64,000 bases of DNA, from the sequence record AP018399.1; one strand, written 5' to 3'. This document shows positions 30,282-55,600 of this stretch, piece after piece. Each line of letters begins with the position of its first letter. Position 1 is the stretch's first letter. The notes below the pieces were generated by a model. That model was not told the origin of the DNA. It worked only from the letters and a program-made list of their open reading frames with translations, and ran no database searches. Made by a program: the position numbers and the translations under genes.

Positions 30282-30390
30282 GGGAATGTAGCTCAGAGGA
30301 CAGAGCGCAGGGCGAGGAAGGGACTGGTTTTCCACCAGTAAACCCATCCAATCTCAGAAGTCAGTGGTTCGAATCCATTCATTCCCACCA
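30282..30390 (+). ncRNA. tRNA-like RNA with extended anticodon arm (109 nt)
   Basis: Acceptor GGGAATG/CATTCCC-ACCA, normal D and T arms, ~33 extra nt. Confidence 0.75.
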
Positions 30391-34299: not shown

Positions 34300-35500
34300 T
34301 GGGTTATAATAAACCCATGACCTACACCGTCCAATACGCAGACAAGAGTCGGCTTCCGACTCTTGTCGCTGCCTACCAACTGGTTGACCAAGCTCTCAAG
34401 GGCTTGGCAATCACGAAGGATTGCGCGGTTACGCTCAATCGCTTCTACTACGACAATGAATTCTTCCTCTTCAACTTCTCCGTGACGTTGAAGGGGACCA
34501 AGCCCTGCATGTACCTGCTTTCCATCCCCAATGACAGTGCGATGGGCATGATGGGCTGGACTATCCGCAGCAACAAGTGGAATGGTCAGCGGGAGCCAAT
34601 CGACTCGCCTGCGTTGTCATTCGGCCACTTCATCCGCAAGACGGACCACGACAAGAACAAGAAGAAGAAATGAACATCAACGAATACAAGAAGCGCAAGT
34701 TCCGTGAACTCAAGGCCAAGAAGAAGGCATTCGGCTTCGAACTATCGGTGCATGACCCGGCTTCCATCATCGCTGCCGCCAAGGCAATCGAAATGGCCGA
34801 ATGGATGGACAAGGGCGTTCTGGTCGAATTCAAGACCGATTACAACGCGCGTGAACTGAAAATCTATACCGATAACCCGGCTTTGGCTGGTGAAATGCGT
34901 CTTCTGTGTTGACAAATCATTGCCAGTATGATTAAATACTGGTAATGACAAACGAAAAAGACATAGCTACAAGGGTAGCTGAAAAAGAAGCTGAGATTGA
35001 ACGTTACAAAGAAATCCTCCACCGGTACCTAACCGGACCCTCACGAACCACTCGCTGGTACAACAACGGCAAGGTTCATCTGGAAGAGCTAGAAGCAGAA
35101 CTAGCTGAACTCAAAAAAGAACTTGACTCTCCAAGTTAATCTGCTATAATTACCCAATCTTCCCAACAGGAACACTTCAATGCCTTGCAGTGATGGTGGT
35201 GTGGCGTATCCCCCGAGCAAAGAAGAACTGGCCGAGCGCGCTTTCATCAAGCGTGCCCCCGGTATGCTCTGCTCGGCCTGTCGTGCGCTGGAATCGTTCG
35301 GCTACGACTTCGACCTGAACCCGGAACTCGCCGACTGGTGGGCCAAGCACAAGGCCGAAGATGCCGAGCGTGAGCGCAAGGAACACGCCAAGCGACTGGA
35401 ACTGGAACAGGTGAACGAAATCATCAAGAAGCCGTTCAAGAACCTGACGGCCGAAGAAAAGCGTCTGCTCAAGAAGCACAACTACCTCTAAGGAACCAAC

Positions 35501-36040
35501 ATGAAATACATTCTCCTGATTCTCGCTCTGATGTTCTCGGCTCCGGTCTTCGCACAGCAGACCGAACAGCGCACTCCGAGCGAACAACTGAACGCTGAAA
35601 TCGCTCAGATGAGCGATGCACAGAAGGCCGAAGCTCTCAAGGCCATCCATGCCGGTCAGTCCGATACTGCGGCCAAGGCTCGCGAGTGGATTGATATCGG
35701 CAATGGCCTCGGTGCTGGTCTGGCCGCTACCGCTGAAAAGCTGGGCGTGGTTGCCAACGACTTCGCCAAGTCTCCGGTCGGCAAGCTGGCAATGGTTCTC
35801 ATCATCTGGAATTACATGGGTGATGACCTGTTGGGCGTCATCATCGGCTTCCCGATGCTGTTCCTCGGTGGCCTGATGTTCGTCTACCAGATGCGCAAGA
35901 CCTATGGCATCTACAACGAAAAGGGCAAGTTCATTCAGTACGACGTGGTTGCTCTGAATGACAGCCGTTGTGGCCCCGGTGTGTTCATGAGCATCGTGTT
36001 CGTCATCTACACCATTGTGTCGATTGTCGTCATCTGCTAA
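35501..36040 (+). CDS. exported/membrane protein
   Basis: Signal peptide and TM helices. Confidence 0.75.
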   Translation: MKYILLILALMFSAPVFAQQTEQRTPSEQLNAEIAQMSDAQKAEALKAIHAGQSDTAAKAREWIDIGNGLGAGLAATAEKLGVVANDFAKSPVGKLAMVLIIWNYMGDDLLGVIIGFPMLFLGGLMFVYQMRKTYGIYNEKGKFIQYDVVALNDSRCGPGVFMSIVFVIYTIVSIVVIC

Positions 36041-36046
36041 GATAAC

Positions 36047-36122
36047 GGCCCGTTAGCTCAGCGGTCAGAGCAAGAGCCTCTAAAACTCCGGGTCGTGGGT
36101 TCGAATCCCACACGGGCCACCA
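36047..36122 (+). tRNA. amber-reading tRNA (CUA), A73
   Basis: 76-nt cloverleaf, loop CT-CTA-AA, CCA. Confidence 0.85.
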
Positions 36123-36129
36123 ATCAAAT

Positions 36130-36205
36130 GCTTTCGTAGCTCAGCGGTCAGAGCAAGAGCCTCTAAAACTCCGGGTCGTGGGTTCGAATCCCACCGAAAG
36201 CGCCA
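36130..36205 (+). tRNA. amber-reading tRNA (CUA), G73
   Basis: Same D/AC/T arms as the previous tRNA but a different acceptor stem. Confidence 0.85.
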
Positions 36206-36245
36206 AGTTGTTGACAAACTCCCATCACTAAATTATACTTGTGCC

Positions 36246-36560
36246 ATGAACGAAATCATCCAGAAGATGTTCCCCACTGGCACTCTCAATGGCCGTGGTG
36301 GTACCGAAGTGAACGGTCTGACCAAGGGCACGGTTCCGGCTGGTACCATTCTCAAGAGTGGACAGGACAAGTTCGACAACAAGGGCCGTCGTGAATTCTA
36401 CGCGGTCGAACTGGATGGGCATGTCGCGTACCTGCGAGTGTGCGAAGCATATCCGGGTAGTGGCTATGACGAATTCGCGGTTATACATCGCGTCGTCAAA
36501 GCCGAAGAGACGGAAGAAGTGAATGAAATTCTCAACACCGTTTCTCGTATGACCAGCTAA
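36246..36560 (+). CDS. hypothetical protein
   Basis: ORF with promoter. Confidence 0.65.
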   Translation: MNEIIQKMFPTGTLNGRGGTEVNGLTKGTVPAGTILKSGQDKFDNKGRREFYAVELDGHVAYLRVCEAYPGSGYDEFAVIHRVVKAEETEEVNEILNTVSRMTS

Positions 36561-36630
36561 AAAGTAGTTGACAAGTTCGATTTTTGTAGTAAAGTATCAA
36601 TCTCGGTGACGGCATAGAGGCCACTCACTG

Positions 36631-36660
36631 GTTCTTTAACAACTTGAGCGGAAACAAGTT
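36631..36660 (+). promoter_or_regulatory. boxA (GTTCTTTAACAA) plus hairpin AACTTG-AGCGGAAA-CAAGTT
   Basis: Matches the rrn/nut boxA consensus, downstream of TTGACA at 36568. Confidence 0.65.
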
Positions 36661-36851
36661 CATAGACTGAACATGCCTCGGTAGGTCAGTATGGTGGCAA
36701 CACCATCTGGGGATGAGGACATGCTAGGAACCAATATGCTTTGGATACGCAGTGGTCGTTCACTAGCCACGACTACGGTATACGCTATCAGCACACAATA
36801 TGCATTGAATGTGCGGCGATTTGAAAGCTAGAGGCGTGTTCAATCTATGAA
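36659..36851 (+). ncRNA. unknown ~190-nt structured RNA
   Basis: 21-bp terminal helix and an internal GNRA hairpin ATGGTG-GCAA-CACCAT. Confidence 0.6.
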
Positions 36852-36855
36852 TTTT

Positions 36856-36980
36856 TGGTAGGTAAGCAAGTGGGCAACGTAAGACGGCAATGGTGTAGGT
36901 ATCCGTGAGGTATCAGAGTACGGTTGAGTCTCCCAGAAACCGTTTCAACTTCGTGAGTTCGAATCTCACCCTACCAGCCA
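36856..36980 (+). ncRNA. tRNA-like RNA (Tyr-like body) with large central insertion
   Basis: TGGTAGG/CCTACCA-GCCA; T arm GTGAG-TTCGAAT-CTCAC. Confidence 0.7.
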
Positions 36981-36987
36981 ATTCTAT

Positions 36988-37052
36988 GCACAGGTTACTT
37001 GGAAGCATCCGGTTGCGCACCGTGATGGGTGGTTCGATACCACTTCTGTGCC
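36988..37052 (+). ncRNA. D-arm-reduced tRNA-like RNA (loop TTGCGCA)
   Basis: GCACAGG/TCTGTGC and a T arm; no CCA. Confidence 0.5.
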
Positions 37053-37066
37053 GCGATTCGTATAGT

Positions 37067-37213
37067 ATTCTGATGGCGAAATAGGTAGACGCGGGGGTCT
37101 AGGCCAATATGGAGAAGGGAGCTAAACATTCCCTCTGCTGCTCATGGTCGGAAACTGCTGTGAAAGCGTTGCAGCAAAACGCTGACCGTGTGGGTTCGAC
37201 TCCCACTCAGAAA
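37067..37213 (+). ncRNA. tRNA-like RNA (Leu-like body) with extended anticodon arm
   Basis: Leu-type D loop GGCGAAATAGGTAGACGC, V arm and T arm; ~60 extra nt. Confidence 0.65.
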
Positions 37214-37224
37214 TTACTATATAA

Positions 37225-37620
37225 CAGTATGGTCGTAATCCCTTTAAAATGAAGGGCGTTCGGACGCGGGTTCGATTCCCGCCACGTCCACCACATGCAT
37301 CTTATAGCCAGAACTGAATCTGGTAAGAGGTAGTCAGCCACATTGAACCTTTCAGTAGAGCGCTGACCTAAGTCGCATGTAGTAACCCGCTTTAGGGTGC
37401 AAGTGATGGGCGTGCCAAGGTTTCGACGGGCGAAGATAGTGGAGAAGGCGACTAGCCAGAGTAGGCTCTAAAACTAAAACCTAAAGTAACTGCCAACGCA
37501 AATACTTTCGATTACGCACTAGCTGCCTAATCCCAAGCACATCCAGCACTTGGTCACCGAACGCTGGGCAATAGCAGTCCTTGGACTGTCTATTGTGAAA
37601 CATCTTCTGGTTCAGCCAGC
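37225..37620 (+). ncRNA. ssrA: circularly permuted (two-piece) tmRNA; tag ANANTFDYALAA
   Basis: Acceptor piece ending CACGTCCACCA (37293) precedes the 5' GGGCGTG (37408); G3.U70; tag 37492-37530; outer ends approximate. Confidence 0.85.
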
Positions 37621-37637
37621 CTAGGCAAAAGACGCAT

Positions 37638-37727
37638 GGCGGTATGGCACTCCGCATACAGAGGGTGTATTCACAATATGCAGTTCGTTATTGAGAGGAA
37701 ATGTAGGTTCGATTCCTACGGTCGCCG
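37638..37727 (+). ncRNA. degenerate tRNA-like element
   Basis: T arm GTAGG-TTCGATT-CCTAC and weak acceptor GGCGGT/GGTCGCC. Confidence 0.35.
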
Positions 37728-37857
37728 CAGACCCCACTATGCTGGTCTGTGAAAAACAGTCGATATGGGTTAATATGGAAAACGCCTCTCATCTTTCAAA
37801 TAGGAGTTGACAATGAGCATTGTTTTTGCTACTATGTCGGCTTCTGTAACAAGCTAC

Positions 37858-38051
37858 GCCCTTGAGTAAGACAGTCAGGGAGTAAGCTCTTAATGTGAGC
37901 ATGGTCGCCCCCACCTTTTGATAGGCTAGCCGGGGAGAGGTTCGAATCCTCTAAGCACCGTTAGGCTGAGACGAAAGGACTACGTTGCGAAGCATTGCAC
38001 GCCAATTCCGGAAACGGCTGGTAGTGTTAGCATCCGACTACAAGGGCACCA
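37858..38051 (+). ncRNA. 194-nt tRNA-like RNA with ~88-nt insert between T arm and acceptor 3' strand
   Basis: GCCCTTG/CAAGGGC-ACCA; internal AGAGG-TTCGAAT-CCTCT. Confidence 0.65.
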
Positions 38052-38104
38052 AATTAGGTGTTGACAAACGAAGAAAGTATGGTAATATGTACTTCTTCAC
38101 CGGT

Positions 38105-38192
38105 AACCACTGACGATTGGCCCACCGCAAAAGGGCCGAAACAGAGAGACACAAGCGAGTTTACCTCCTTCCTCGCCGTCTCCTGTCTGGTT
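38105..38192 (+). ncRNA. hammerhead ribozyme-like RNA (type I), predicted cleavage after GUC at 38187
   Basis: CUGACGA, stem II GGCCC/GGGCC, GAAA, stem III ACAG/CTGT, stem I AACCA/TGGTT; extra UU after A9. Confidence 0.7.
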
Positions 38193-38214
38193 TGACAACT
38201 TGAGTGCGGAAACA

Positions 38215-38995
38215 ATCTCAAGGTGGAATAGCGTACAGTGATGTGCGTAAAGTGTGGCCCGCTCAGGCTGCGCACCATGCAAATGGCTCCATCAAACAAG
38301 CACCGACTCCGGGGCACGCCAAAAGTGTGTCACGGCCCTTGTGAAGAACCACGAGGGAACTTGGAAAAGGTGCCCGACAAGCTAGTCTTGGGACAACTGA
38401 GACAGTTTCCACCCGCAAAGTGGATTAGGGATGCAACACGGATACCAAGCACTAGTCAAGGTGTAGAACATAAGCATGAGGCTGCAACCAAGTGCGATGT
38501 TCAGTGAAGTGGGACTGTTTAACAGGCAGAACCGCATATACAATCCGAGTAGCCGCAAGCGAAAGGATACAGGGGCGTGTTGTATTTGGTACTTCAAAAG
38601 GGTATCGAGCAACGGCAACACACGTCCTGAGCAACAAAACAACTTCATAGGTTAATGAAATTAATTAAACGCAAAGTTGTTGCCGGTGCATGATGAAAGT
38701 GACGTAATGCTTGACACGCAAGTGAATCAAGCCATTCCGAGGCTCGCAAGGCAGAGGGGTGTTGTGGGAAAGTCGCACGTTTGGGGTCGAACCCTTTACT
38801 GCTCGCAAGGCAGGCGGTAGACAGAACCATGAATAGTCATGCACGACAGTGGAAATGCCACCACTTTAATCTAGGCCGTCATGGTTGCTACTCACATGAG
38901 TGAGTGGATAACGGTAGAAACTTCGCTCGCAAGCGGAGTATAATGACCGGAAAGGTAACCAATCAATGCTGTAATCTCAGGCAGGCTTTTCCAAT
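38215..38995 (+). ncRNA. giant ornate ncRNA, GOLLD-like (~780 nt)
   Basis: No credible ORF, many GNRA hairpins, tRNA context, GGCGTGTTGTA..CAAAAGG and GTAATCTCAG motifs recalled from GOLLD. Confidence 0.6.
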
Positions 38996-39052
38996 AAATT
39001 CAAGACCTTGCAGCTTTAAGCGCAATCACACTAAATAGATTTACATTTCTAT

Positions 39053-39138
39053 GCGGGTGTGGCCGAGTGGTCGATGGCACTAGTCTTCCAAACTAGACTC
39101 AGAAATGGGCGCGAGTTCGAATCTCGCCACCCGCTCCA
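39053..39138 (+). tRNA. tRNA-Gly(UCC) with long variable arm
   Basis: Loop CTTCCAA, U73, V arm CTCAGAAATGGG. Confidence 0.85.
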
Positions 39139-39263
39139 AATTCAAAGAATTCAAGACAGATGTACACTGGACTGAATCGTCATTAGCGCCCAAGGGTGCA
39201 GAGAGTTCCGCTAGTATCTCGCTGCAACGACGTTAATGAATGTTCGACTAGCTCCAAATTTGA

Positions 39264-39342
39264 CGCGCGGTACAATCAATATCGGCAGATGGGCACCCTC
39301 ATAAGGTGTCGGTTGGGAGTTCAAGTCTCCCCTGCGCTACCA
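39264..39342 (+). tRNA. tRNA(CAU), initiator-like C1 mismatch
   Basis: C1.U72; lacks the three anticodon-stem G-C pairs. Confidence 0.75.
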
Positions 39343-39443
39343 AACCCGGATAGGGTAGCTCCCTATCCTTCGTAGGTGTGACCGGCTCTCATGAGGCTTG
39401 TCGGTTCTTGACTGAGCAACCTACAACCAATTCGTAGTACAAT

Positions 39444-39528
39444 GGGCGTGTGGCGGAATTGGCAGACGCACTAGATTTAGGTTCTAGCGCCGCAAGGCGT
39501 GTGGGTTCGACTCCCACCTAGCCCACCA
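39444..39528 (+). tRNA. tRNA-Leu(UAG)
   Basis: Class II cloverleaf. Confidence 0.95.
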
Positions 39529-39704
39529 AACGTCGGTCGGTACCTTAAGCAAGTACCGCCAAGTTATCAGTGATTTGCCTAGTTTAAGCTGATGGCTCGC
39601 CGTGAAACAGTCGGATATTAAAACGGGTAGGGTGTCGCCGATAGACTAGTGAATCAGCTTGCTAAGGGCTGGGAATCGAAACTGCTACTTAGCTTCCATT
39701 CTAT

Positions 39705-39779
39705 GGAGCATTCGTCTATCGGTTAGGACGCTAGACTTTCACTCTGGAAAGAGGGGTTCGACTCCCCTATGCTCTACCA
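39705..39779 (+). tRNA. tRNA-Glu(UUC)
   Basis: Cloverleaf with CCA. Confidence 0.95.
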
Positions 39780-39783
39780 ACAC

Positions 39784-39813
39784 AGAAGCCCGCCTAGTGC
39801 GGGCTTTTCTTTT
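39784..39813 (+). terminator. intrinsic terminator ending the RNA island
   Basis: AGAAGCCCGC-CTAGT-GCGGGCTTTT-CTTTT. Confidence 0.85.
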
Positions 39814-40540
39814 TGCTATATAATAATTGGAACATAGGATTTCAAATGGAATTATCCCCAATCCACCAATTATTGATTCTGGGAACGCTGACGCTCATCG
39901 CCGTAGTCTCGGTGGTTTCGCTCGCCTATCAGATGTACTTCCTGCCCAAGAAGCGCAAAGCCTTCCTCATTAAAGAAATGGGACATTGCTTGCTGACTCG
40001 TGAGCAAATTTACGGTGCGGAACTCATCAACCACTGCCGAACCATCCTGCATAATATCGACATACATTGCAGTATGAGAGAAGGATTCAAGATGGTCTAC
40101 ACATACGGCAAGTATGAGATAGGCGTCAACTGGTATCCTGTCAATGGATTGTTTGAGTTCACCTTCCCGGTCAAGTACGAAACGATTGCGAAAATTTACT
40201 ATCCGACTTGACAAACGAAGTTGATGGGTCTATAATTCTCATCATCAAGTCAGGACACACAATGACCACTTACAACGAAGAGTCGAGAGCGAAGATTTAC
40301 GAGCAGTATCCGCAGAAGCCCCGTGAGCAGAAGCGCATCGGTGGCCTCATCGAAAACTGGTCGCTGGTTCCGTTCAATGGCGATGACAAGAAGCTGGTCA
40401 TCGTGGGGTCGCTGAGTGGCGACAACTATTGGGACAAAGGCCCAATCCGTACTTCGCTCATCATGAGCATCAATGAAGATGAGACTGAGGCCGAAACCCT
40501 CAATACCATCTACAAGCTGGGCGTCAAGGCTTCGGCCTAA

Positions 40541-40830
40541 CGCCTAGGGTGGGGAGAGTCACTTTTCGCAGGTTATGGCTCCCCACAAGAATGAAATCTG
40601 CCAGTTTACCGCCCCAAGCTCGTGCTGTGGCATGGTCACCGTATTTGACCGGTCTACCACTACAGCCGGACCGACACACTAGGACAACTCTCACTAATCC
40701 TAGGTAAAGCGGTCGCCCTGTGAGAAGGGAAAGGATGTACCGACAAGTAGCGGCTCCCTCGTGGAGTTTCATGGTTGCGAAGCCATGATACTAATGAAGC
40801 GCGAAATCAGGTACAGCCCGAGCTAGGTGG
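40541..40830. ncRNA. unknown structured intergenic RNA
   Basis: AGCTCG-T-GCTGT/ACAGC-C-CGAGCT closing helix with several inner hairpins. Confidence 0.5.
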
Positions 40831-40884
40831 CTTGCATTTGACCTTCTGGTTTGTTATAATCAAGACCAATCCAGAGGTACCGAC

Positions 40885-41613
40885 ATGAAAATCACATCAA
40901 CGTGGCTCCTTACATCCGCTGCCCAAGTCGTCATCACGATTGCTGTGGGCGCGTTCATGCTGGTCAATGCCGCAGTGATTGGCTTCTATGTCATTGAAGG
41001 ATATGGGAATTATCAGAAGAAGGAATCTGCGGACGTAATCCTCACCGGTCGCGTTCACACGTTCTCGTCTCTGGAATTCACCACGAATCCGGCCGGTACC
41101 ATGCGTACCTGCGTCGGGGTGACCGCTAGCAACGGTCGGATGGTGGTTCGCGAACTCGGTGATTGGGAAGGAAACCTTCCGGCCGGTGACTTCTGTGGGC
41201 AGCTTTTCAGCGCCAGCAACCTCACCAACTGGAAGCATATGGCACCAACATCCAACGGCACCAGTGTGCTTGAGAAGGTGTTGTGGTCCATTGCTTTCTT
41301 CGTCGTGTTCATGAGTGGTGCGTATCTGGTGGCGTCGATTCCTGCCAATCTGGTGGCTATCGCATTGCCGGGACTGGCTCCGATTGCCAAGTTGATGGCG
41401 TTGGCGTTCACGCTTCCTGTGCTGCTGTTCTGGGCAGTGTTCGTCACCAGTGCATGGCAGTACCATCCGTCGTATTGGAAGTCGCCTGACGGCTATGTGG
41501 TCGAGACTGAGAAGGTCTTCATCACGCGAGACAAGCGAGTGTTCACCGCTCCGGAAACGTTGTTCGGATGGACCTCAAGCAATACGATGCAAGAACGAAA
41601 GGTGTTCGAATGA
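40885..41613 (+). CDS. multi-pass membrane protein
   Basis: GAGG SD and hydrophobic helices. Confidence 0.7.
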   Translation: MKITSTWLLTSAAQVVITIAVGAFMLVNAAVIGFYVIEGYGNYQKKESADVILTGRVHTFSSLEFTTNPAGTMRTCVGVTASNGRMVVRELGDWEGNLPAGDFCGQLFSASNLTNWKHMAPTSNGTSVLEKVLWSIAFFVVFMSGAYLVASIPANLVAIALPGLAPIAKLMALAFTLPVLLFWAVFVTSAWQYHPSYWKSPDGYVVETEKVFITRDKRVFTAPETLFGWTSSNTMQERKVFE

Positions 41614-54865: not shown

Positions 54866-55600
54866 TTACTTTGAAGCGATTGCAGTGAAGTAGCGGATTG
54901 GGTTCAGTAGCTTTCCGTCTCGTCTGATTTCGACGTGGACGTGAACGCCAGTGCTGATTCCCGTTCTACCAGCTTTTGCAATTTCCATACCTGCTGTCAC
55001 AATGTCACCGGCCTTGACAAGCAAGCGTGAGTTGTGAGCTAGTAGCGTCGTATAACCATTCTCATGGTCAATCTCAACTACATTCCCGTATCCGTTTCGG
55101 ACGCCTGAGAAGACGACACGACCGGCTGCGGGGGCCAGAACAGGTGTACCTAGCTTGGCGGCTAGGTCGATTCCGTCGTGATGACGAACTCGTCCCCTGA
55201 CTGGATGCTTTCGCCATCCGAAGGCAGAGGTAATGATGCCAGTGAGAGAAGGGATGCGGGAAGAGGCTTGCGAGTCATCTTGTGGTTCCTCGCCCAGAAT
55301 GTTTTCTGGCTTCCGAATGAAGGATGCTAGAGGGTCTTCATCTAGCGTTGGCACATCAAATGGTGTCTGGTACACCGGTTTTGGTAGATTCAAAAAATCG
55401 CTCACGCGAGCGTTAGGACTTAGTGGTTCTACCAGTTGGGTTGCGGCAATCATCCCGGCTGTCTGCCCATGTTCAGCGGCAGATGCAGTTTGCGTGATGC
55501 TTCCGATTACCATCAGTGGTATCAGAAGGAATATCGCTGCTGCTTTCTTAATTACGGACGGTCTGTACAAGCTCCCATCCTTGGTTAGTAGTTCATGCAT
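54866..55600 (-). CDS. M23 family peptidase
   Basis: HDGIDL ... GYGN ... HNS ... STGVHVHVE. Confidence 0.9.
   Translation of the reverse strand: MHELLTKDGSLYRPSVIKKAAAIFLLIPLMVIGSITQTASAAEHGQTAGMIAATQLVEPLSPNARVSDFLNLPKPVYQTPFDVPTLDEDPLASFIRKPENILGEEPQDDSQASSRIPSLTGIITSAFGWRKHPVRGRVRHHDGIDLAAKLGTPVLAPAAGRVVFSGVRNGYGNVVEIDHENGYTTLLAHNSRLLVKAGDIVTAGMEIAKAGRTGISTGVHVHVEIRRDGKLLNPIRYFTAIASK

Follow-up and report, generated by a model that had tools for sequence, protein, structure and literature searches.

An unannotated GOLLD RNA gene with a hammerhead-like leader in the tRNA island of Xanthomonas phage XacN1

The stretch of DNA analyzed here (64,000 nt, hereafter the window) corresponds with 100% identity to positions 1-64000 of Xanthomonas phage XacN1 (AP018399.1) and has two matching places in that record. 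The XacN1 genome has direct terminal repeats of 65,875 bp located at 1-65,875 and 318,796-384,670 (PMC5852040), and because the GOLLD RNA gene described below lies inside this repeat it is present in two copies per genome. XacN1 is a jumbo myovirus that has replication genes in common with T4-like phages and that is not classed as T4-like (PMC5852040), so the term ‘T4-like phage’ used in the initial annotation is a loose one. The deposited record contains no annotated feature between 36561 and 39052, and the words tmRNA, non-coding and noncoding are absent from the XacN1 paper (PMC5852040). This gap is part of a tRNA island, and the 64-kb window has at least 29 tRNAs and one tmRNA. As had been noticed at the outset, tRNA genes are present on both flanks of the element, with tRNA-Gly (from 39053), tRNA-Leu and tRNA-Glu on the 3’ side and a permuted tmRNA plus two suppressor tRNAs on the 5’ side. 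Coordinates of the features of the locus are collected in Table 1.

Several additional features were observed in this island. The tmRNA at 37177-37621 (+) is of the permuted, two-piece type (Rfam tmRNA_permuted, 123 bits; beta_tmRNA, 108 bits), has a tag peptide of ANANTFDYALAA as called by ARAGORN and lacks annotation in the XacN1 record; a permuted tmRNA is likewise found at locus L114, roughly 7 kb from the GOLLD gene there. The two suppressor tRNAs are in tandem at 36047-36122 and 36130-36205 (+) and have a CUA anticodon (amber suppressors), being recorded as tRNA-Sup in the deposited annotation and called Pyl by ARAGORN. The unannotated gap also contains cryptic tRNA-like elements on the plus strand at 36856-36982, 36988-37052, 37132-37214, 37615-37728 and ~37925-37962 that exhibit a T-arm and acceptor-like ends and that are missed by standard ARAGORN and Rfam searches. 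Those at 36988-37052, 37132-37214 and 37615/37638-37728 are called only when the ARAGORN intron option or a lowered threshold is used, and those at 36856-36982 and ~37925-37962 were recognized by eye only. Possible identities for these elements are tRNAs with introns, pseudogenes and processing signals. Elsewhere in the window, an Rfam tRNA match of 45.6 bits at 30282-30387 (+) is 106 nt long, does not appear in the ARAGORN output and may contain an intron.

Table 1. Positions of the features at the XacN1 GOLLD locus and of related promoter sites in the window.
Feature	Position	Strand	Basis or remark
GGTGTTGACAA sites (among others)	8611, 11936, 12228, 17313, 17932	-	motif count
GGTGTTGACAA sites (among others)	14989, 25254, 36207, 37803, 38057	+	motif count
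Promoter-like site, sigma-70-type (TTGACA-16-TAAAGT)	36568-36595	+	consensus scan, 10/12; head of non-coding cluster
boxA-like GTTCTTTAACAA	36631-36642	+	11/12 against pattern GCTCTTTAACAA; 36 nt downstream of the 36568-36595 -10 box
Sigma-70-type promoter of the GOLLD unit (TTGACA-16-TAATAT with extended TG)	38061-38088	+	consensus scan
Type I hammerhead-like leader	38103-38187	+	grammar match, covariation, model R1, folds
Stem I, 5’ strand AACCA	38105-38109	+	
Core CUGACGA	38110-38116	+	
Inserted UU between A9 and G10.1	38117-38118	+	
Stem II, GGCCC...GGGCC	38119-38137	+	
GAA	38138-38140	+	
Stem III with inner hairpin, A38141 paired with U38186	38141-38186 (46 nt)	+	
C17	38187	+	predicted cut between C38187 and U38188
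Stem I, 3’ strand UGGUU, left on GOLLD after the predicted cut	38188-38192	+	
Predicted mature GOLLD RNA, ~799 nt	38188-38986	+	contig spans of runs X15 and X17
GOLLD 5’ domain, outside the Rfam model	38188-38569	+	iterative nhmmer homology; RNAalifold
GOLLD 3’ domain (RF02032)	38570-38983	+	227.3 bits; CM1/RAS14 sequence conservation stops at 38983
A/U-rich variable linker of the 3’ domain	~38632-38671	+	unstructured part of the Rfam model, low posterior probability
GCAA-tetraloop hairpins of the 3’ domain	38742-38752, 38801-38811, 38924-38936	+	Rfam alignment
tRNA-Gly	39053-39138	+	downstream tRNA, same strand as GOLLD
Weak tRNA match	39265-39337	+	Rfam, 31.3 bits; not in ARAGORN or deposited annotation
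tRNA-Leu	39444-39528	+	downstream tRNA, same strand as GOLLD
tRNA-Glu	39705-39779	+	downstream tRNA, same strand as GOLLD
First intrinsic-terminator-like hairpin 3’ of GOLLD	39784-39808	+	10-bp stem followed by a T run

The initial annotation had read the element as a GOLLD-like RNA from motifs resembling the GOLLD 3’ domain and had proposed a covariance-model search as the check. This search upholds the reading, as the Rfam GOLLD model (RF02032, gathering score 150) aligns with the plus strand from 38570 to 38983 at 227.3 bits (E 4e-63), covering model positions 1-416 of 416. The repeated CTCGCAAG (CGCAAG) hairpins that had drawn attention to the element are located where they had been placed, at 38743, 38802 and 38926, and correspond in the Rfam alignment to the GCAA-tetraloop hairpins of the GOLLD 3’ domain; there are seven such sites in the window versus 2.6 expected, three of which fall within 190 nt. 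The A/U-rich linker follows the first hairpin of the 3’ domain and in XacN1 contains no tRNA. A tRNA gene is nested in the linker at L011:638-709, at L023:6515-6586 and in L144 (449-520 nt after the cut site), which is a trait already known for the GOLLD family. BLAST relatives of the element are found in the Stenotrophomonas jumbo phages CM1 and RAS14 (74% identity) and in the Xanthomonas phages BUDD and X1, all four of which score above the GOLLD threshold (179-218 bits) and have their copies within tRNA islands. In RAS14 the GOLLD promoter is preceded, at a distance of some 500 nt, by an HNH homing endonuclease (L003:1957-2466) that sits between two tRNA genes and is annotated as a phage intron.

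The region upstream of the Rfam match was analyzed by comparing it with other GOLLD loci. A gapped pattern built on two CGCAAG hairpins yielded 120 viral contigs, and 67 sequences in the collection have 3’-domain nhmmer matches; for every 3’ domain, the preceding 750 nt served as input for iterative nhmmer searches. These searches link the XacN1 5’ domain (38200-38562) to 50 of the 52 other GOLLD loci, with homology in most loci starting at profile position ~100-110, which is equivalent to ~38200 in the window. When 46 distinct sequences were folded jointly with RNAalifold, 29 helix pairs were obtained, 26 of which are changed on both sides, and these belong to helices that include the GUGA-loop hairpin at 38232-38247 as well as 38466-38502 and 38504-38542. 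A P1-like hairpin is also present at 38199-38222. XacN1 thus has the less conserved 5’ domain, in the ~380-420 nt class, that is a feature of GOLLD membership, and the homology together with the covarying pairs indicates an ordinary two-domain GOLLD architecture. Of the five loci retrieved with a 5’-domain pattern, four (L007-L010) lack a GOLLD; we took these for chance or truncated matches and left them out. We also rejected the idea that the GOLLD 5’ end usually derives from an adjoining upstream tRNA, since ARAGORN finds a tRNA within 60 nt in only a minority of loci.

On the basis of the covariance-model score and the homologous 5’ domain, we conclude that the XacN1 element is a genuine, previously unannotated GOLLD RNA gene, and thus a new member of a known family. 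Two other identities for the element were weighed, both of which we regard as exceedingly improbable. One of these is that the region codes for small proteins and that the RNA-model match is incidental. There are indeed reading frames on both strands, the longest that overlap 38100-39000 being 89 aa (38238-38507 +, GTG start) and 88 aa (38382-38648 -). However, alignment with CM1 and RAS14 reveals indels of 8, 4 and 6 nt within these ORFs, indicating that the reading frame is not conserved, which bears out the earlier statement that the element has no credible ORF. Covarying base pairs, the 4e-63 E value of a structure-aware model and the fact that the depositors annotated no gene there also argue against a coding role. 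The other is that the element is a different large ornate phage RNA, either ROOL or a new class, that is merely GOLLD-like. ROOL RNAs have the same phage and tRNA context (PMC5737381), but GOLLD is the sole family reported and it matches at full length, while no ROOL match was obtained in the Rfam scan either at the gathering score in the window or at E<=1 in 35500-40500. The same scan, with the same thresholds over the same two intervals, gave no large-RNA family besides GOLLD. That the 5’ domain is homologous to those of other GOLLDs likewise speaks against a ROOL or a new class.

We next consider what sequencing libraries reveal about this RNA. Approximately half of the 31-mers of the element are present in many soil and wastewater runs. 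Four runs (X1, X5, X15 and X17) were compared over positions 35600-41500. Run X1, a soil DNA library, covers most of the stretch including the flanking ORFs at a roughly even depth of 8-12. Run X5, from wastewater, is labelled RNA-Seq and was rated as probably DNA, and it also covers most of the stretch including flanking ORFs at roughly even depth; both of these runs contain a relative with ~97% identity to XacN1. The two RNA libraries exhibit a very different profile. Specifically, X15 (soil) has a single GOLLD contig of 768 nt that spans 38225-38979 plus seven further 3’ letters, and X17 (tick) has a single GOLLD contig of 782 nt that spans 38205-38979, also with seven further 3’ letters. 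Depth in both is zero on the flanking ORFs (35600-35993, 36388-37175 and 39934-41500) and is also zero over 38096-38160, such that the leader is absent from the RNA-library contigs. Both contigs end at ~38986, in agreement with the 3’ limits of both the Rfam match (38983) and CM1 conservation. These are assembled metagenomic contigs from relatives with 95-96% identity, not XacN1 reads, and for this reason the RNA ends that they give are approximate. These assembled contigs indicate that close relatives of XacN1 probably accumulate a discrete GOLLD RNA of ~770-780 nt. The interval of 38215-38995 that had initially been assigned to the element is therefore close, with 38188-38986 (799 nt) now the best estimate for the mature RNA, which would be preceded by a leader of ~93 nt that begins at ~38095. 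As a separate observation, relatives of the XacN1 stretch that share about half of its 31-mers occur in soil, wastewater and tick libraries from several studies (runs X1-X20), and therefore XacN1-like phages, or the GOLLD RNA itself, are environmentally widespread.

Immediately upstream of the leader there is a consensus sigma-70-type promoter whose AAATTAGGTGTTGACAA and -10 box are kept in phages CM1 and RAS14. The motif GGTGTTGACAA, with one mismatch at most, occurs 12 times in the window versus 1.2 expected, and 11 of these 12 sites have a -10 box at a distance of 16-17 nt. We consider these sites to be a family of predicted sigma-70-type promoters, and they probably function as host-polymerase promoters within the terminal repeat. 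Downstream, the spacer between GOLLD and tRNA-Gly is 67 nt, and the hairpin that follows tRNA-Glu is the only plus-strand terminator-like site in 35500-40500. Since GOLLD and the tRNA-Gly, tRNA-Leu and tRNA-Glu genes are on the same strand with no terminator-like site ahead of the tRNAs, they are probably co-transcribed.

The leader itself has the appearance of a type I hammerhead. Sequence conservation of XacN1 with CM1, BUDD and phage X1 begins at ~38100, which is ~100 nt ahead of the universal GOLLD core, and the XacN1 sequence in this region has a complete catalytic core (C3-U4-G5-A6-N7-G8-A9, G12-A13-A14, A15.1-U16.1, and an H17 that is not G). A strict hammerhead grammar has just this one match on either strand of the 64-kb window and none in 50 shuffles, and both the MFE and centroid folds yield stems II and III. 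Copies directly upstream of GOLLD were also identified with our own covariance model (R1) in CM1, BUDD, phage X1, L114, L023, L088, L144, L165, L197 and L222, that is in 10 other GOLLD loci, including two with stem I sequences that the model had not seen. The structural alignment of these divergent hammerheads was built by script. All three stems covary across the 11 GOLLD-linked copies; a count in six distinct copies gave compensatory changes at 11 of 14 stem pairs, with pairing in 77 of 78 cells. Invariant in these copies are the core CUGANGA...GAA, G10.1-C11.1 and A15.1-U16.1, with H17 being either C or A. The top R1 match in the window is 38103-38194 (21.8 bits, E ~4e-4), in which the UU counts as an insertion. 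This match is partly circular because the clade itself supplied the pattern by which the training sequences were retrieved. A further R1 match at 55428-55523 (-), at 20.7 bits, has CTGATGG without A9, no GAAA and AAC before TGGT, and was set aside as probably due to chance.

Model R1 was built from hammerhead copies located between phage genes. A scan of metagenome and genome contigs with the clade-derived pattern gave 159 matches, 39 of which pass the grammar, and four to five of these 39 precede GOLLD (L144, L165, L197, L222 and L182, the last being the L114 contig). Around 35 are compact type I hammerheads in phage intergenic regions, situated mostly just before a ribosome-binding site and ATG. 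Pairing in 22 intergenic copies is 95.7%, versus 70% in shuffles (0 of 500 reach the observed value) and ~34% in slid registers. The compact intergenic copies have an ACCA/UGGU stem I (e.g. L178:562-624 (-) and L185:3144-3205 (-)) and are sometimes repeated between successive genes, as in L198 where two are 592 nt apart. A second hammerhead is also seen at the 3’ end of GOLLD at L114:3334-3391 (+) and L165:1847-1905 (-), with R1 scores of 31 and 41 bits, respectively. GOLLD is thus flanked by hammerheads on both sides in L114 and L165, and XacN1 has no 3’ copy. When GOLLDs were sampled irrespective of hammerheads, only 3 of ~43 (~7%: L023, L088 and L114) were found to have one, indicating that a hammerhead is not required for GOLLD function. 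It is instead a feature of a GOLLD subclade.

These results support a leader that probably trims the GOLLD 5’ end by predicted self-cleavage. The predicted cut is 12 nt ahead of the first universal GOLLD hairpin and 17-37 nt ahead of the starts of the RNA contigs, and it coincides with the start of universal GOLLD homology. The main competing explanation accepts the GOLLD gene and holds that the leader is catalytically dead, or is a structural 5’ extension, with the RNA running from ~38095 for a length of ~890 nt. One argument for this is that the UU inserted after A9, ahead of G10.1, could make cleavage slow or prevent it altogether. An additional base following A9 is known from viroid hammerheads. 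One or two inserted U residues are also present in CM1, L144 and L222 and absent from the nearest relatives, which is the pattern expected for tolerated variation. Specifically, the relatives found in runs X1 and X5 lack 38117-38118 and have U in place of C38114, giving the canonical core CUGAUGA/GGCCC. It can also be argued that a promoter located only ~10 nt upstream leaves no obvious need for a ribozyme, and that an alternative helix in the MFE structure between ACCGG (38099-38103) and CUGGU (38187-38191) would bury the cleavage site. Against a dead leader are the starts of the RNA contigs at 38205 and 38225 together with zero depth over 38096-38160 in two libraries, homology to most GOLLDs that begins only at ~38200, and retention of the full catalytic core while the stems covary. 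That Rfam hammerhead models do not match the leader is a further point in favor of the dead-leader explanation; Rfam ribozyme models gave nothing in the window, in 35500-40500 or, for the hammerhead models at E<=10, in the 201 nt of 38060-38260. However, these models also miss L023, L088, L114 and 20 loci with textbook copies, and at gathering thresholds they detect 0 of the ~35 compact intergenic hammerheads. Their silence is therefore weak negative evidence from models that are insensitive for this short class. Taken together we regard a dead or purely structural leader as unlikely. The ‘ribozyme’ of the initial annotation is thus supported, as a putative type I hammerhead-like motif directly upstream of GOLLD that no Rfam ribozyme model matches.

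Farther upstream, a boxA-like element heads a stretch of 3.2 kb that has no annotated ORFs and that contains the tRNA-like elements, the tmRNA, GOLLD and three tRNAs. This GTTCTTTAACAA is the sole plus-strand boxA-like site (G[CT]TCTTT[AG]A) in 64 kb, and the count of the boxA pattern in the window is not above chance (2 versus 3.6 expected). The ‘boxA leader’ that had been noted is therefore partially sustained, in that the site is present but by itself is not above chance, and two promoters separate it from GOLLD, which begins 1.5 kb farther downstream. In other GOLLD loci a motif of this kind was noticed between a promoter and the GOLLD core. Of 46 distinct loci, 18 have G[CT]TCTTT[AG]A in the sense orientation in the 400 nt that precede the core, versus 0.63 expected from a background of all fetched loci, an enrichment of ~29-fold that is approximate because the motif was chosen after seeing examples. 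This distribution suggests that GOLLDs may often reside within rRNA-like antiterminated units. Our literature search found no paper relevantly linking GOLLD with a hammerhead or boxA. Note that the segment just after boxA (36638-36658, ACAACTTGAGCGGAAACAA) is almost the same over 20 nt as the hairpin that comes first in the mature GOLLD (38194-38216, ACAACTTGAGTGCGGAAACAA); a duplication or a boxB-like hairpin common to both could account for this likeness.

The explanation that we favor for the locus as a whole, to which we assign a probability of roughly 0.72, is that of a GOLLD gene with its own promoter, a 5’ end cut by the hammerhead, a shared operon with tRNAs and, by analogy, assembly into a cage. 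Host sigma-70 RNA polymerase would initiate at the promoter at 38061-38088, with read-through from the upstream promoter and boxA-like site (36568-36642) predicted to add transcription. The resulting non-coding operon would contain the hammerhead, GOLLD, tRNA-Gly, tRNA-Leu and tRNA-Glu and would end at the terminator at 39784-39808. Cleavage by the leader between C38187 and U38188 would then produce a GOLLD 5’ end with a 5’-OH, while the 3’ end at ~38986 may arise through processing of the spacer ahead of tRNA-Gly, either by RNase P or by RNase E, with exonuclease trimming to the last helix. The GOLLD RNA from env-38 forms a homo-14-mer cage with an interior linker (Kretsch et al. 2025, PMC12286853). 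By analogy, the ~800-nt XacN1 RNA, with separate 5’ and 3’ domains, may close into a homo-14-mer cage that has its A/U-rich linker inside.

We also considered two broader ideas, neither of which we favor as strongly. The first is that GOLLD is made in the manner of rRNA, with boxA/Nus antitermination heading the unit and the ends being subsequently cut precisely, in the XacN1 subclade by the hammerhead; the boxA/Nus sites would in this scheme protect and chaperone a long untranslated, structured transcript, and precise ends would be important because a cage must be closed by the RNA. We put this at somewhat short of an even chance. The second concerns function, and to our knowledge the GOLLD family has had no known function since 2009. 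We tentatively propose, as a possibility more doubtful than the rRNA-like route, that GOLLD may be an accessory of the phage takeover of translation that acts on tRNAs or ribosomes. This suggestion stems from the company of tRNAs and a tmRNA, from the tRNAs nested in linkers and from a ribosome pull-down cited by Kretsch et al. (PMC12286853).

What is new at this locus is a mapped promoter, a probable self-cleaving leader as predicted from motif and covariation, a 3’ end at ~38986 and a phage-host system that can be cultured. The GOLLD cage structure was solved in 2025 from a metagenomic sequence without a host (PMC12286853). XacN1, CM1, RAS14, BUDD and phage X1 are isolated lytic phages with culturable hosts, and this, together with the mapped promoter, ends and operon partners, makes deletion, time-course and pull-down experiments possible. 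Clues to how giant GOLLD RNAs may be made come from the hammerhead leader and from the boxA enrichment. Finally, both GOLLD and the adjoining tmRNA are missed by the XacN1 record and paper.

The XacN1 locus can be compared with several known systems. It resembles ROOL in specifying a large ornate phage RNA near tRNAs, ROOL also being an RNA-only cage, and differs from it in that ROOL has another fold, forms an 8-mer and has no sequence or structure match in XacN1. With the leaders of rRNA operons it shares a boxA-like GTTCTTTAACAA located 36 nt after a promoter and heading a 3.2-kb stretch rich in structured RNA; unlike those leaders, the XacN1 site is 1.5 kb from GOLLD with two promoters in between, and is a candidate site by sequence only. 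A class of type I hammerheads in phage intergenic regions was reportedly described by Perreault and colleagues in 2011. The XacN1 leader has the same succession of ACCA, CUGANGA, a G-C-closed stem II, GAAA, an A-U-closed stem III, GUC and UGGU as type I phage hammerheads, whereas it differs from the intergenic copies in having a UU after A9 and a stem III of 46 nt, and in preceding a giant non-coding RNA where the intergenic copies precede a ribosome-binding site and ATG. GOLLD RNA itself is said to have been described by Weinberg and coworkers in 2009, and to this family (RF02032; env-38) the XacN1 RNA conforms in its full-length 3’-domain match, homologous 5’ domain, length of ~800 nt, A/U-rich linker and location in a phage tRNA island. 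The 14-mer cage is known for env-38 only and is proposed for the XacN1 RNA by analogy. The XacN1 gene differs in that it belongs to a host clade of Xanthomonas and Stenotrophomonas jumbo phages and lies in a 66-kb terminal repeat that gives two copies per genome, and it has its own consensus promoter as well as a hammerhead-like leader of a kind that is found in only a minority of GOLLDs.
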